DNA of 64,000 nucleotides from Lytechinus pictus (taxonomy: Eukaryota), in contig NC_087246.1 in NCBI RefSeq assembly GCF_037042905.1, forward strand, positions 15,252,001-15,316,000, given 5' to 3'. This document shows positions 33,948 through 43,248 of this stretch, piece by piece. Numbering within the stretch: the stretch's first letter is position 1; each line of letters opens with the position of its first letter. The notes under the pieces are model-generated. The model was given only the letters and a program-made list of their open reading frames with translations, was not told the DNA's origin and made no database searches. Both the position numbers and the translations under genes were made by a program.

Positions 33948-36900
33948 ATGCCTGCCAAAGGAAAGAGGTGGTTGCTTGTAAAACACTTTGATGGTTTCCC
34001 GAAGGAAAGTGACATGAGGCTAGAGGAGTTTGATCTACCAGAGCTCAAAGATGGGGGTAAGCTATTCATTAGAAGATTTACATTGTTTGTGATCCAACAT
34101 CATTGGTAGGTTTACGTATATGCAAGATTCTTGTAAGATCTTCTCGATTGCTCTCTTTCGTTATCGGTTTTAAAACTGTATAGTGATGTCAATATTGAAG
34201 AATTAGAAAATAAGTAAAAGCTTTTCATAGATTTGGCATTGATTACCTGATGTTGTAAGGATTTTTTCCGTAGATATTTTCGCTACATTGTATTTTGATA
34301 TTGTTCCTTTTCTGTCTTTTGCAAAAAAAAATGTTAGTAATTTAAATTATTTGCCACATATTTTTATTGCAATGTTTTTACGTAAACAATAGTAACAGTG
34401 CTTGGGTTTTTTTTTTTTTTTTTATAGCGGATTGCATGCGCTTAAGATATAGGGTAAGTATAAAGTAATGAATTAAAATAGCTAAGAAGCAAGAAGGCGC
34501 ATGTAATTGACACTGAGTTTACTGTTAATTTATGTTTAAATTTGATAATGATCTAGGAGAATTTCCCTCTCTCTATAGAAATATTGTTGGAAGCCGAATA
34601 TCTGTCAGTGGATCCTTACATGAGGTAATCTTTTTGAAATTACCTCGACTCTCTTATTTTTTTAATATATAAATCGTCGAGTTTTTCTTCTTTCCATTAT
34701 TTATTTATTTCATTAATTTGTTAATTTATCTTTTAATTCATATATTTTGCTGAAGTGTTGTCATTTTAAGGTGTGTTTGTTTGATCATTGATCATTCTCA
34801 TGCAGTTTTATTCATTAAGGAGCGAGGTTACCGACCGCCCAAATGATTATAAAATGATGATAATGAATGGAAATAAAGCGAAAATATGAAGTAAAGGGTA
34901 AAAACAGTAATGAAATGAGATGACGTAGTCTTATAACTTAGCAATACAATATTTTGTGTTCTAATTTATAAATCTTATTTAAATCTTTTGATTATCTTGC
35001 ACAACATCAAATTTCCTTGGCGATGCCCTTGAAATGAAACTATAGGCCTACTTCCCAATATCACCCTACGGTGTCCCTTTTGATGATTTTGGCAAAAGAT
35101 CAAGGTGCTTTAGAATGTTCAAACAGTTAAAAGGGACGTAAATTTTATCTTTGAATGTAAACCACTTTCTCGTGCTGATATTTGGATATTGGTGGTATTC
35201 ATGCCGGATCATTATCAATTTCTGAATAACTAAAGAATGCAGTTAAAGAATTCATAAAAGAAAACGCGTTAAGCACAAATCACAATGATTATTGATTGTT
35301 GTACATGTATTATTCTTTACATTCTTTAGACCTTACAGTGCCAGATCACCGTTGAATACTGTCATGATCGGGCAACAATTGGCAAAGTAAGTAAAGTTCG
35401 ATTTATCAGCAATATTCATTTTTCCCTCAATCTAATATTGTATTATATTAATGGAAGTATAAAATGAATTAAGATAAGTATTTGAATTGATTTACAGTAA
35501 ATGCTTAGTCACATTCGGCTACATTATGGAGGGAGTGTAAAATATCATAATCTGTCTTGTAAGTCTTAGGTCAAACAATAACTTTAAATCATATTAATGA
35601 GGAATGCTATAGGTTAAGCCTCCGTGTCCATTAAACATGTTAAAAGAATAATGGACTTAGATTCCATTAAAATAATTGATACTCGTATTATTTTTTCTTC
35701 ACACTTTCAGAATAAGGTATTTTACTGTTTAATATATACAGGATAAAAGGTATATTCATGACGTGATTAAACTTTATATTGCACGATCTCGTAACACAAT
35801 GTTCCTTTCGTTGCACACAGCAGGGGCGTAGAATATATCCCGCATTGTCCAATAGGCATGAGGGGGGGGGGGGCAGAAAAAAAATCATTCACGTTCTCCC
35901 AGATCTACTCATCGAAGAGCCAACATAAATTGATAGAGACTGATGGTTTCATCTTTGTTTTATTTCGAAACAAGTTCGTGTATTTCATTAAGCCTAAAAG
36001 TTTATAAATATATGAGCAAAACGCGATCTGATTTTTGTTGAACGCAATGACCTAAAAAAGAGACATTGTAACCTCTGTCTGAATCTATGAATAGGATATA
36101 TTCATTTTCATTTATTGTTTCTGCAACTTTTTCATTTATATACAAATTAATAAAGGAAATGCATGACACATATTAAACAAAATATTTAACAATAATAAAT
36201 ACGGGGAATAAATAGGAACAAAGTCATATTTTCTATAACAAAGATTTAAAAAGGTTGCAGGGGCTGTCACTATAAGCTTAGCTTGAATGAATCTCAATTG
36301 AGCGCGAAGCATGAGCTGAAATTAGTTGATATACCGTCCTGAAAGGGGAACTTTTTGTTTTAGAAATCATGAACAAAATATATGTATCTCACAAACAATA
36401 ACGCAAGCTTACAGCTCTCAGCTTTTTTCAATGTACTTTTCTGAAAAGGTATTGTATCACCTTTTGAAAATGAAGAGGAAAGAGTCTCACTAAACAAATA
36501 ATGTGAGTGCGATCAATGGGCGAGCTCACTTTTCGTTTTCCTTTTATTTTTCCTCTTCCCTCCTTTTCCTCTTTTCNNNNNNNNNNNNNNNNNNNNNNNN
36601 NNNNNNNNNNNNNNNNNNNNNNNNNNNNNNNNNNNNNNNNNNNNNNNNNNNNNNNNNNNNNNNNNNNNNNNNNNNNNNNNNNNNNNNNNNNNNNNNNNNN
36701 NNNNNNNNNNNNNNNNNNNNNNNNNCCTTTCTTCATCATCGTTGTACGGAAGAAGTAGGTAGTCCTGTAGTGCTTCTTCGTCGTTTTATTTCCCTTTTTT
36801 CTTGCGCCGCCAGTAAGTGGAGGGGTCTTCACTCCCAGGATTCACCTGTGCACGAGAAACAAATAATCATGGAAACTATCGTCATTTTGAGAGAAAGGTG

Positions 36901-42900: not shown

Positions 42901-43248
42901 GTACACTATACGAAAAATGATGGCCTGAGAAGAGTACTTGAGAGCCCCAAATGCTAATTAGTAGATGATCGCTGAGGAGTATACAGAGATGATATGAGCC
43001 GGGGATTTGAGAGATCCTGGCAGCAATGAGTAGATGAACAATGCATATGGAGAATAGATGAGATGAGATCATATAAGATTATTATTTGAAGATCATTTAG
43101 ACAATTATTAATTTCCTTTCATTATCAATTGTTACAGGGTAAGATCAAGGTTCGAGAGCACAGGACTGATGGGTTTGATAACATGTTCAAAGCATTCGCT
43201 GAACTCTTCACCGGAGCTAACACAGGAAAAGCTATCGTCAAAGTCTAG
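33948..43248 (+). CDS. PTGR1: Prostaglandin reductase 1-like, copy B (apparent C/A chimera), 328 aa
   Basis: Exons 33948-34056, 34579-34624, 35330-35386, 37008-37172, 37661-37778, 38389-38544, 39030-39135, 41314-41432 and 43138-43248. Exon lengths and phases match copy A, the frame is open and the same MDR motifs are present. Confidence 0.94.
36577..36725. other. Assembly gap
   Basis: Run of N. Confidence 1.
37193..37282 (+). repeat. Degenerate intronic duplicate of the 3' half of PTGR1-B exon 4
   Basis: actgacaaggatctcgtgaagatgctccactccctgagagaataccc...ggatca...gacagg resembles 37090-37176. Confidence 0.85.
39996..40214. mobile_element. Palindromic MITE inserted in the LINE 3' tail
   Basis: aaattacagggatttaaaataagtccagatggactgtagctagggaccaatcg / cgattggtccctaactacagtccatgtggacttgttttaaatccctgtaattt. 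Confidence 0.8.
40320..41170 (-). mobile_element. 5'-truncated CR1/L2-clade LINE (RT C-terminus), frameshifted, in PTGR1-B intron 7
   Basis: [71 protein letters not shown] and HNYNTR motifs split over two frames. Confidence 0.9.
41906..42477. mobile_element. MITE with G/C-run termini and 8-bp TSD
   Basis: ggggggcacttccattgacgagtggataccatgcgcgaccaa / ttggtcgcgcatggtatccactcgtcaatgtaagtgcccccc; TSD aattaaac at 41898 and 42478. Confidence 0.85.

Follow-up and report, generated by a model that had tools for sequence, protein, structure and literature searches.

Three PTGR1-like genes lie in tandem in the L. pictus window

The window, a 64,000-nucleotide stretch of the Lytechinus pictus genome (contig NC_087246.1, positions 15,252,001 to 15,316,000), carries three PTGR1-like genes in tandem, here designated A, B, and C. 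All three are intact and share the + strand, and each has nine exons, GT/AG borders at every intron, and an open frame of 328 codons encoding a 328-aa protein; exon lengths are the same throughout (109, 46, 57, 165, 118, 156, 106, 119, and 111 nt). Gene A, the upstream parent type, spans positions 20750 to 30665, with exons 1 to 5 at 20750-20858, 23522-23567, 24472-24528, 27078-27242, and 27743-27860 and exons 6 to 9 at 28353-28508, 28943-29048, 29947-30065, and 30555-30665; its protein is XP_054749226.2. Gene B, the hybrid, spans 33948 to 43248 and encodes XP_054775653.2; exons 1 to 5 are at 33948-34056, 34579-34624, 35330-35386, 37008-37172, and 37661-37778, and exons 6 to 9 are at 38389-38544, 39030-39135, 41314-41432, and 43138-43248. 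Gene C, the downstream parent type, spans 46759 to 54328 (exons 1 to 5 at 46759-46867, 47735-47780, 48415-48471, 50170-50334, and 50967-51084; exons 6 to 9 at 51904-52059, 52563-52668, 53389-53507, and 54218-54328) and encodes XP_054749225.2. Both parental types are thereby kept intact, one on each side of the hybrid.

PTGR1, or leukotriene B4 12-hydroxydehydrogenase, is an NADP-dependent alkenal/one oxidoreductase of the MDR superfamily. The B protein matches this family over its full length (PDB entries 1V3T, 2Y05, and 9D6Y), with an E value of 3.3e-106 against 1V3T across residues 3 to 326. It contains an ADH_N_2 domain (Pfam PF16884; 105.7 bits, cut-off 31) followed by an ADH_zinc_N domain (PF00107; 88.6 bits, cut-off 31.8), and the AAGAVG cofactor motif is present as in the family. 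B departs from the family at the glycine of the K-G-C-(K/R)-V motif, where 211 of 213 homologues have Gly and B has Glu (G166E). The initial annotation had described B as an intact hybrid enzyme. Intactness of the frame was upheld, and a dN/dS of 0.12 to 0.25 agrees with it; the enzyme part of the claim is less well backed, given G166E, which alters a near-invariant glycine, and given that no B transcript was seen in four public runs. An enzymatic function for B is thus a prediction from its sequence.

Exons 4 to 8 of B had essentially no depth in the four public runs, which included raw RNA reads, and these data give no evidence for or against expression; the read depth that was present on 36730-42700 came from repeats in introns 7 and 8. 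The only spliced contig, which joins exon 5 to exon 6 in run X10, was rejected as a B transcript, since it carries the A-type GGA at the start of exon 6 and an A at 38433, which assign it to gene A. Exon 6 has two acceptors side by side.

Gene B changes from C-type to A-type sequence

According to the initial annotation, B is a C/A chimera with a C-type front and an A-type back. Informative sites, introns, and approximately unbiased (AU) tree tests all confirmed this. In exons 1 to 4, B agrees with C at 85 informative coding sites and with A at 8; in exons 7 to 9, it agrees with A at 81 and with C at 14. A further 36 coding sites are private to B. The maximum chi-square test for recombination put the break at the boundary of exons 4 and 5 (between CDS 375 and 378), with a value of 106.6; none of 10,000 permutations reached this value, the largest permuted value being 23.2.

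The introns were compared by local alignment against shuffled controls. Introns 1 to 4 of B matched only the LpC and LvC introns (z of 4 to 33), and introns 5 to 8 matched only the LpA and LvA introns (z of 6 to 37); between A and C introns, essentially no alignment was possible. The C-like character claimed earlier for exons 1 to 4 and their adjacent introns, and the A-like character claimed for introns 5 and 6 and exons 7 to 9, therefore both hold. The intron comparison repeats the picture given by the exons, free of any coding constraint.

Separate trees for the two halves gave conflicting placements of B, in line with the chimera. Grouping of B with the Lytechinus A genes was rejected in exons 2 to 4 (AU p = 7.5e-4), and grouping with the Lytechinus C genes was rejected in exons 7 to 9 (AU p = 3e-50). 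A first set of AU tests had probed timing rather than parental type, because the split can sit on the long central branch, and the tests were re-posed for parental type.

The C-derived part of B extends from 33921 to 37326 and comprises 27 nt of 5' flank, exons 1 to 4, introns 1 to 3, and the start of intron 4. Within intron 4 it includes a second, non-coding copy of the 3' part of exon 4 (37195-37283, + strand); as first noticed in the initial annotation, this duplicate is common to B and C and absent from A. The C copies are at 50365-50455 and 50501-50587. The A-derived part extends from 37644 to 43397 and comprises the last 17 nt of intron 4, exons 5 to 9, introns 5 to 8, and about 150 nt of 3' flank.

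The switch is single and lies in intron 4

There is one C-to-A switch, located in intron 4 between 37327 and 37643. This junction interval has no detectable homology to either parent, and most of it is covered by a dispersed repeat (37342-37650), about 280 bp long and present in the genome at least 40 times. The interval adjoins exons 5 and 6, a block with 91 to 95% identity between A and C. From 37644 on, in the final 17 nt of intron 4 and the opening codons of exon 5, the sequence is of A type. The A-like start of exon 5 was thus read correctly at the outset, but the patchy junction that had been placed inside exon 5 was not, as A-type sequence begins upstream of that exon. The "C-type" stretch in exon 5 on which the patchy junction relied proved to be mostly an artefact of L. 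pictus A-specific changes at CDS positions 411 and 420, where the L. variegatus A bases are the same as those of B and C.

The spacers and the 3' flank are duplicated

The A-B spacer (30666-33947) and the B-C spacer (43249-46758) carry collinear paralogous segments. Segment X1, at 32243-32895 in the former, and segment X2, at 45155-45690 in the latter, are paralogues (z of 31.5), and they lie at nearly the same distance upstream of the next ATG (1053 bp for X1 and 1069 bp for X2). Beyond the stop codon of B, the flank at 43272-43397 matches that of A in both Lytechinus species (30731-30858 in L. pictus; z of 8.5 to 9.8); no match to the C flank was found (z of about 0). Upstream of B, C-like sequence reaches only 27 nt before the ATG. 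A crossover product is expected to carry the promoter of C, and the short C-like 5' flank counts against such an origin to that extent; the remaining spacer sequence is too diverged or has been replaced.

Non-coding sequence gives one age for the B unit

Exon trees and parsimony patterns did not place the B split before or after that of L. pictus and L. variegatus (support of 51 to 76; AU p of 0.10 to 0.49), and for this reason dating was taken from non-coding sequence, as Kimura two-parameter (K2P) distances from alignments restricted to homologous sets. An eight-way alignment of intron 6 was dropped, having mixed in non-homologous C-type introns that inflated the distances. Between B and C, distances in introns 1 to 3 were mostly 0.39 to 0.58; the first 520 bases of intron 3 gave 0.91 to 0.94, in a region where the C genes of L. 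pictus and L. variegatus themselves differ by 0.56. Between B and A, introns 5, 6, and 8 gave 0.53 to 0.78, and X1 and X2 differ by 0.41 to 0.50. For comparison, orthologues of L. pictus and L. variegatus differ mostly by 0.07 to 0.20, and non-coding sequence of Lytechinus and S. purpuratus by about 1. The introns 5' and 3' of the switch and the spacers of the B unit thus show similar non-coding divergence, about 0.4 to 0.6, and have one age. Equal age of both halves and the spacers is what a single duplication of a unit made up of the A 3' half, the spacer, and the C 5' half predicts. Judged by these distances, the event that produced B is old, with a divergence about 3 to 4 times that between L. 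pictus and L. variegatus.

Exons have exchanged sequence since

Synonymous divergence is less even. It is 0.21 between B and C in exons 1 to 4, and between B and A it is 0.36 to 0.59 in exons 7 and 8 and 0.14 to 0.19 in exon 9; taken by halves, B gives 0.21 vs 0.39. A single-event origin consequently needs later gene conversion to account for the uneven exon values. Evidence for such conversion is clearest in exons 5 and 6, where the dS between A and C is 0.14 to 0.29, vs more than 2 elsewhere, the genes group by species with support of 100/100, and exon 5 of the L. variegatus A gene has C-type bases in its 3' part. These two exons have been homogenised among all copies by later exchange. Exons 1 and 9 probably contain conversion sub-blocks too, and the high-identity blocks near them end abruptly. 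The pattern of a gene-conversion mosaic, in which similarity is limited to a tract, the flanks are unchanged, and the spacer is single, was seen only in such sub-blocks and not in B overall. At the protein level, the A-derived C-terminal half of B has evolved about twice as fast.

The orthologous locus differs between urchins

Urchin proteins were reached by way of one sea-cucumber PTGR1; a search with exon 4 only gave mostly fragments. Copy number at the orthologous locus, which the initial annotation had put forward as a check, is two genes (A and C) in L. variegatus and three in S. purpuratus, the middle one of C5'/A3' type. In L. variegatus, A and C are 5.2 kb apart at a locus without N, and B is absent from the assembly. 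The single L. variegatus spacer corresponds to L. pictus 30667-32913, from the left spacer, joined directly to 44977-46758, from the right one. The intervening L. pictus block of 12,063 bp (32914-44976, + strand) contains the right end of the A-B spacer, gene B, and the left part of the B-C spacer. Because L. variegatus retains orthologues of both X1 and X2, its two-gene state is most likely a secondary loss of B in a 12-kb deletion, and not the ancestral pair.

The two spacers of the three-gene S. purpuratus array are collinear paralogues with 71 to 77% identity. In the middle gene, Sp2, exon 1 resembles C, differing from Sp3 by 2.8%, and exon 3 and all later exons resemble A, differing from Sp1 by 4 to 6%, with exon 2 compared by protein only. 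Its breakpoint is in intron 1 or exon 2, a rough placement made at the protein level via allele P0167. The C5'/A3' middle gene of S. purpuratus is separate from B and breaks at another place; it is probably the product of an independent event.

Unequal crossing-over between A and C probably explains gene B

The initial annotation had derived the A-[C5'/A3']-C array from unequal crossing-over, and the geometry, the paralogous spacers, the A-like 3' flank, and the equal non-coding age now support that derivation. We consider B to be a hybrid from one unequal, non-allelic crossover between A and C, two PTGR1-like paralogues of ancient divergence arranged in tandem, with a probability of roughly 0.8. 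The locus has the features of an anti-Lepore-type product: paralogues in the same orientation, a middle gene that joins the 5' part of the downstream gene to the 3' part of the upstream gene, one switch, a duplicated spacer and flank, and a single age. Crossing-over as the physical mechanism is what we infer from these features. The downstream C gene on one chromatid would have paired with the upstream A gene on the other, with exchange in intron 4, immediately before the block of exons 5 and 6, the sole part in which A and C are very alike. The product would read A, spacer, C exons 1 to 4 joined to A exons 5 to 9, spacer, C; the same outcome can be described as the A 3' half, the spacer, and the C 5' half being duplicated in tandem as one unit. 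The exchange would have taken place in the Lytechinus lineage, after the split from Strongylocentrotus and well before that between L. pictus and L. variegatus. Short gene conversions would later have kept exons more alike than introns, acting on exons 5 and 6 among the three genes, on exons 1 to 4 between B and C, and on exon 9 between B and A. Transposable elements entered introns 4, 7, and 8 of B, its A-derived C-terminal half changed about twice as fast at the protein level, and B was most likely removed from L. variegatus by the 12-kb deletion. Two further observations sit less easily with the crossover. The exact junction is not visible, as 37327-37643 matches neither parent and is mostly later repeat insertion, and introns 4 of A and C are unalignable today, which offers no present-day support for a strictly homologous exchange there.

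A chimera could also be produced by the assembly, had haplotypes or paralogues been misjoined at a gap or within the contig. Intron 3 of B does contain an N gap (36577-36725), and the four public runs on 36730-42700 yielded no read or contig reaching from exon 4 to exon 7, including none over 36930-38329. However, the gap affects no exon, C-type intron 3 continues collinearly on both its sides, and the switch is 600 to 900 bp to its right, in sequence that is free of N from 36726 to 64000. At 30% divergence or more from A and from C, the B introns show that neither half of B is a copy of either parent, and the 36 private coding sites speak against a mosaic in the same way. The earlier RefSeq protein version, XP_054775653.1, is the same chimera with 3 amino-acid differences of an allelic kind, and a contig from run X1 matches 38879-39663 with 2 differences. 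A misassembled B is accordingly very improbable. Somewhat less remote, though still unlikely, is an origin of B as a full-length tandem duplicate of A or C, one half of which was later overwritten by a long conversion tract from the gene on the other side. That gene conversion acts at the locus is clear from the homogenised exons 5 and 6 and the C-type bases in L. variegatus A, and both the unequal dS of the two halves and the abrupt ends of the blocks around exons 1 and 9 would suit it. It is, however, the deep intron backbones that switch parent and not the exons alone, and the A-like part continues past the stop codon into the 3' flank. A later overwrite should also leave one half younger, whereas both halves are equally diverged from their parents (about 0.4 to 0.6), to the same degree as X1 from X2. 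A tract of 3.4 to 5.7 kb across unalignable introns would be unusual, and the same C5'/A3' orientation in S. purpuratus is predicted by crossover and not by conversion.

The crossover could instead have preceded the split of the two genera, the array with a hybrid middle gene being a single ancient invention common to Lytechinus and Strongylocentrotus, followed by concerted evolution, with B and Sp2 as orthologues. The order of the three genes, with Cgr1 after them, is the same in the two genera, both middle genes combine a C-like 5' end with an A-like 3' end, and in exons 7 to 9 a split of B from the A lineage before the genus split was not rejected (AU p = 0.26). Against a common origin, B breaks in intron 4 but Sp2 in intron 1 or exon 2, a clade of B and Sp2 was rejected in exons 7 to 9 (p = 0.0013), and a position of B outside the C clade was rejected in exons 2 to 4 (p = 0.017). 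Non-coding divergence between repeat units is 0.4 to 0.6 in L. pictus and about 0.4 in S. purpuratus intron 6, where the spacers are 71 to 77% identical; introns compared between the genera are saturated or unalignable (about 1). Whole introns and spacers would have to be homogenised by conversion to mask a common origin. We regard an invention common to both genera as improbable.

Comparison with known hybrid genes

In haemoglobin anti-Lepore, unequal crossing-over joined the delta and beta globin genes, and the hybrid is the duplication product. Gene B resembles it in arising from tandem paralogues in the same orientation, in joining a downstream 5' part to an upstream 3' part with one switch, and in being flanked by the retained parents. 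The two differ in that the B event is ancient and not a rare polymorphic allele, in that A and C were already very diverged (dS > 2) save in exons 5 and 6 and the junction is in an intron, and in the reshaping of B by subsequent conversion and by insertion of transposable elements. The red/green opsins, CYP11B1/CYP11B2, and glycophorin A/B likewise include hybrids formed by non-allelic homologous recombination within tandem arrays. These share with B the shuffling of exon blocks between tandem paralogues to give an intact chimeric product, with some exons in concerted evolution. Those hybrids are recent, however, and their parents are more than 90% identical throughout, whereas homology between the urchin genes is confined to a central exon block; the urchin locus, unlike them, also appears to have yielded a second, independent chimera in another genus. 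B is a clean new example of a textbook mechanism and involves no new one.

In the literature library that was searched, no paper on urchin PTGR1 arrays was found. The locus offers a well-resolved natural case of exon-block shuffling between very old paralogues (dS > 2) in a tandem array, in which the footprints predicted for unequal crossing-over, namely the 5'/3' geometry, the duplicated spacer, and the halves of equal age, are still readable after long divergence. It also brings several processes together in one place: gain of a hybrid, concerted evolution limited to certain exons, a deletion in the sister species L. variegatus, and probably a second, independent event in another genus. We tentatively suggest, at slightly less than even odds, that the urchin PTGR1 array is a recurrent maker of hybrids, with independent crossovers in Lytechinus (intron 4) and Strongylocentrotus (near intron 1/exon 2) and a deletion in L. 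variegatus, and that the fast C-terminal half of B has perhaps been adapting to an N-terminal half of foreign origin within one catalytic domain, yielding an enzyme with a new range of substrates. In the laboratory model L. pictus, A, B, and C form a ready domain-swap series for asking which half sets substrate choice in PTGR1-type alkenal/one reductases.

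Three PTGR1-like genes in tandem

Scans of the 64-kb window with peptides, blastn, and tblastx found exactly three PTGR1-like genes, all on the + strand. Gene models were built by hand from the splice junctions, and the predicted proteins are identical to the L. pictus entries XP_054749226.2 (gene A, 20750-30665), XP_054775653.2 (gene B, 33948-43248), and XP_054749225.2 (gene C, 46759-54328). Each gene has nine exons of matching lengths, introns that are all GT/AG, and an open frame of 328 codons. Over its full length, B belongs to the PTGR1/LTB4 12-hydroxydehydrogenase family; Pfam identified ADH_N_2 and ADH_zinc_N domains, and the solved structure 1V3T matched with E = 3e-106. 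An earlier L. pictus version of the C protein, XP_054749225.1 (P0265), shows four residue differences (T3A, D15N, A97V, and V259M); residues 3 and 97 are in the states of B and L. variegatus C, which indicates polymorphism at both sites within L. pictus. Two remoter PTGR1-like paralogues, with exon 6 65-69% identical to that of B, are found on contig C9 of genome G000 (21.07-21.12 Mb). One is apparently complete; the other has only exons 6, 7, and 9 in the fetched stretch, with a degenerate exon 6 copy close by.

The middle gene is a C/A mosaic

The initial annotation held that B matches C in exons 1-4 and A in the 3' exons, and both coding and non-coding sequence bear this out. Coding sites that distinguish A from C and at which B shares one of the two states favour C by 85 to 8 in exons 1-4 and A by 81 to 14 in exons 7-9. 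A maximum chi-square test placed a single break between CDS positions 375 and 378, the exon 4/exon 5 boundary, with a value of 106.6; none of 10,000 permutations matched it, the highest reaching 23.2. The introns provide an independent check, free of coding constraint: local alignments are significant for introns 1-4 of B only against C-type introns, whether from L. pictus or L. variegatus (z 4-33), and for introns 5-8 only against A-type introns (z 6-37), while the A and C introns can barely be aligned with each other. The two halves also conflict in phylogeny. With the S. purpuratus genes included, AU tests rejected a grouping of B with Lytechinus A for exons 2-4 (p = 7.5e-4) and of B with Lytechinus C for exons 7-9 (p = 3e-50). 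The partial exon 4 duplicate said to be shared by B and C is indeed present in intron 4 of both, once in B (37195-37283) and as two tandem copies of the 3' part of the exon in C (50365-50455 and 50501-50587), and is missing from A. Of the two in C, the first can still be read as an open stretch of 21 residues. In S. purpuratus, intron 3 of Sp3, the downstream gene, holds a duplicate of the 5' part of exon 4 (merged L017/L018 coordinates 21633-21718).

The initial annotation had placed a patchy junction inside exon 5. Instead, C-like sequence in B ends near 37326, and A-like sequence already begins at 37644, in the final 17 nt of intron 4. Exon 5 opens with A-type codons, as had been noted, but the "C-type" stretch described in this exon is largely an artefact of private L. 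pictus A changes at CDS 411 and 420, where L. variegatus A has the bases of B and C. The interval between 37326 and 37644 resembles neither parent. It consists mostly of a dispersed repeat of ∼280 bp (37342-37650) that intron 4 lacks in both A and C and that a whole-genome search found in at least 40 copies at ∼73% identity, so a later insertion conceals the junction or lies next to it. Since the A and C introns 4 cannot be aligned today, no homology can be seen at the switch point; the junction directly adjoins exons 5 and 6, the sole highly similar block between A and C.

It is unlikely that B is an artefact of assembly. The window (A+T 64%) has runs of N at 7238-7449, 22974-23125, and 36577-36725, the last a gap within intron 3 of B (35387-37007), and the runs sampled contained no direct reads bridging the B junction. 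However, intron 3 is collinear with C-type intron 3 on either side of the gap, none of the nine exons is missing and each has the length seen in A and C, and the switch of parent near 37.3-37.6 kb sits in continuous sequence, the window being free of N from 36726 onward. Neither half can represent a copy of A or C, because the introns of B are at least 30% diverged and 36 CDS sites are private to it. The same mosaic, with three amino-acid differences, is seen in a previous RefSeq version of the B protein, and a contig from the public read run X1 matches B at 38879-39663.

Probable origin by unequal crossing-over and probable loss in L. variegatus

When C on one chromatid crosses over unequally with A on another, the product must have the order A-spacer-[C5'/A3']-spacer-C, the middle gene having its front part from C and its back part from A. 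Such an event predicts that the spacers are duplicates, that the 3' flank of the hybrid is A-like, and that all parts have one age. The 3' flank of B (43272-43397) resembles that of A in L. pictus and in L. variegatus alike (z 8.5-9.8) and shows no match to the C flank. The A-B spacer contains a segment X1 (32243-32895) and the B-C spacer a segment X2 (45155-45690); the two are paralogous, with 64% identity overall and 81% in one stretch, and the next ATG lies 1,053 bp past the end of X1 and 1,069 bp past that of X2. The crossover origin proposed in the initial annotation is thus supported, with non-coding K2P distances that point to one age, and B can be classed as an anti-Lepore-type hybrid gene in a tandem PTGR1 array.

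Non-coding K2P between B and C is mostly 0.39-0.58 in introns 1-3; it rises to 0.91-0.94 over the initial 520 bases of intron 3, a stretch in which the C orthologues of the two species are themselves 0.56 apart. Between B and A it is 0.53-0.78 in introns 5, 6, and 8, and between X1 and X2 0.41-0.50. Corresponding values are mostly 0.07-0.20 between the two Lytechinus species (0.13-0.20 for X1 and X2 orthologues) and ∼1 for Lytechinus versus S. purpuratus. These distances date the event to after the split of the genera and make it about 3-4 times as old as the divergence of L. pictus from L. variegatus.

Copy number in relatives, suggested earlier as a check, is three genes in S. purpuratus and two in L. 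variegatus (GCA_018143015.1). In the latter, A and C lie 5.2 kb apart in sequence without N, and no B-like sequence was found between them. Non-coding sequence of the two species aligns along almost the entire locus at 77-92% identity. The L. variegatus spacer corresponds to L. pictus 30667-32913 and 44977-46758, joined directly at L. variegatus 21977/21980, and carries the orthologues of X1 and X2 side by side. Because both are present, B and the spacer duplication are most simply read as older than the species split, and the two-gene state as the result of a deletion in L. variegatus of a 12,063-bp block (32914-44976). Lineage-specific spacer insertions were also seen, of ∼630 bp in L. pictus (31383-32012, A-B spacer) and ∼2 kb in L. 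variegatus (merged 22941-24945).

Later exchange among the genes

A bare single event does not account for uneven exon dS, high-identity blocks with abrupt ends, and a short C-like 5' flank. In exons 5-6 the L. pictus genes are 92-93% identical (91-95% for single exons), against 57-80% between A and C in the remaining exons; A-C synonymous divergence is 0.14-0.29 in exons 5-6 and >2 elsewhere. In the exon 5-6 tree the genes cluster by genus, Lytechinus versus S. purpuratus, with 100/100 support. This homogeneity is concerted evolution by gene conversion, which explains the patchy look of the middle of B. In exon 5 of L. variegatus A (merged L015/L016 coordinates 16223-16340), the 3' part is C-type at CDS 453, 474, 480, and 486, sites at which L. 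pictus A and B and the S. purpuratus genes agree among themselves; it looks like a conversion tract from C into A.

Exon dS is 0.21 between B and C in exons 1-4, and between B and A 0.36-0.59 in exons 7-8 and 0.14-0.19 in exon 9, values that are uneven and below intron divergence. As orthologue dS (0.10-0.13) equals intron divergence, the deficit between paralogues points to later exon-centred gene conversion rather than constraint on silent sites. The abrupt blocks lie at 33921-34131 (91.5% identity) and 43101-43253 (88%). Upstream of B, C-like sequence stops 27 nt before the ATG, so B appears to have had its promoter region replaced.

A hybrid middle gene in S. purpuratus

In S. purpuratus (GCA_000002235.4) the three genes are followed by Cgr1, likewise next in L. 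variegatus, and the two spacers are collinear paralogues (71-77% identity). Exon 1 of Sp2, the middle gene, is 2.8% from Sp3 and ∼20% from A-type genes; exon 2 is A-like by protein, and from exon 3 onward Sp2 is 4-6% from Sp1, the upstream gene. Sp2 has the C5'/A3' geometry of B with a different breakpoint. A (B, Sp2) clade was rejected for exons 7-9 (p = 0.0013), and B outside the C clade for exons 2-4 (p = 0.017). Both results are consistent with independent origins in Lytechinus and Strongylocentrotus, which we consider probable; concerted evolution could mimic this pattern. XP_011671730.1 (P0266), an older "isoform X1" of Sp2, combines C-type exons 1-3 with the same exons 4-9, and could be an allele with another breakpoint or a gene-model artefact.

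The hybrid protein and nearby elements

Against its parents, B has a dN/dS of 0.12-0.14 for the 5' part and 0.21-0.25 for the 3' part, indicating purifying selection. Against Sp1, dN in the 3' half is 0.126 for B and 0.061 for A with similar dS (0.81 versus 0.72), so protein evolution has about doubled in the A-derived half; the 5' half shows no such excess. Residue 166, at the start of exon 6 (38389-38391), is GAG (Glu) in B and a Gly codon in A and C. Gly occupies this position of the K-G-C-R-V motif in 211 of 213 homologues, and B alone has Glu, which could alter or impair cofactor binding. The exon 6 acceptor carries AG twice in succession (AAG GAG), which, judging from the sequence, makes a form of B without residue 166 possible. 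The sampled RNA runs yielded no reads from B exons.

B is of the same kind as other anti-Lepore hybrid genes, the textbook outcome of unequal crossing-over; a literature search found no paper on urchin PTGR1 arrays. Its added interest lies in its age, its likely loss from the sister species, what is probably an independent repeat in S. purpuratus, concerted evolution limited to exons, and a faster-evolving hybrid protein with G166E.

Intron 8 of B contains an element of ∼570 bp (41909-42468) with 42-bp terminal inverted repeats. Thousands of candidate genome copies at ∼91% identity mark it as a young, high-copy MITE-like transposon, which explains the very high RNA-run contig depth over this interval. 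Intron 7 contains a near-perfect palindrome of 220 bp (39995-40214), for which Rfam returned weak, far sub-threshold matches to MITE-derived plant miRNA families; related pieces lie at 32818-32895, inside X1, and 45613-45690, inside X2.
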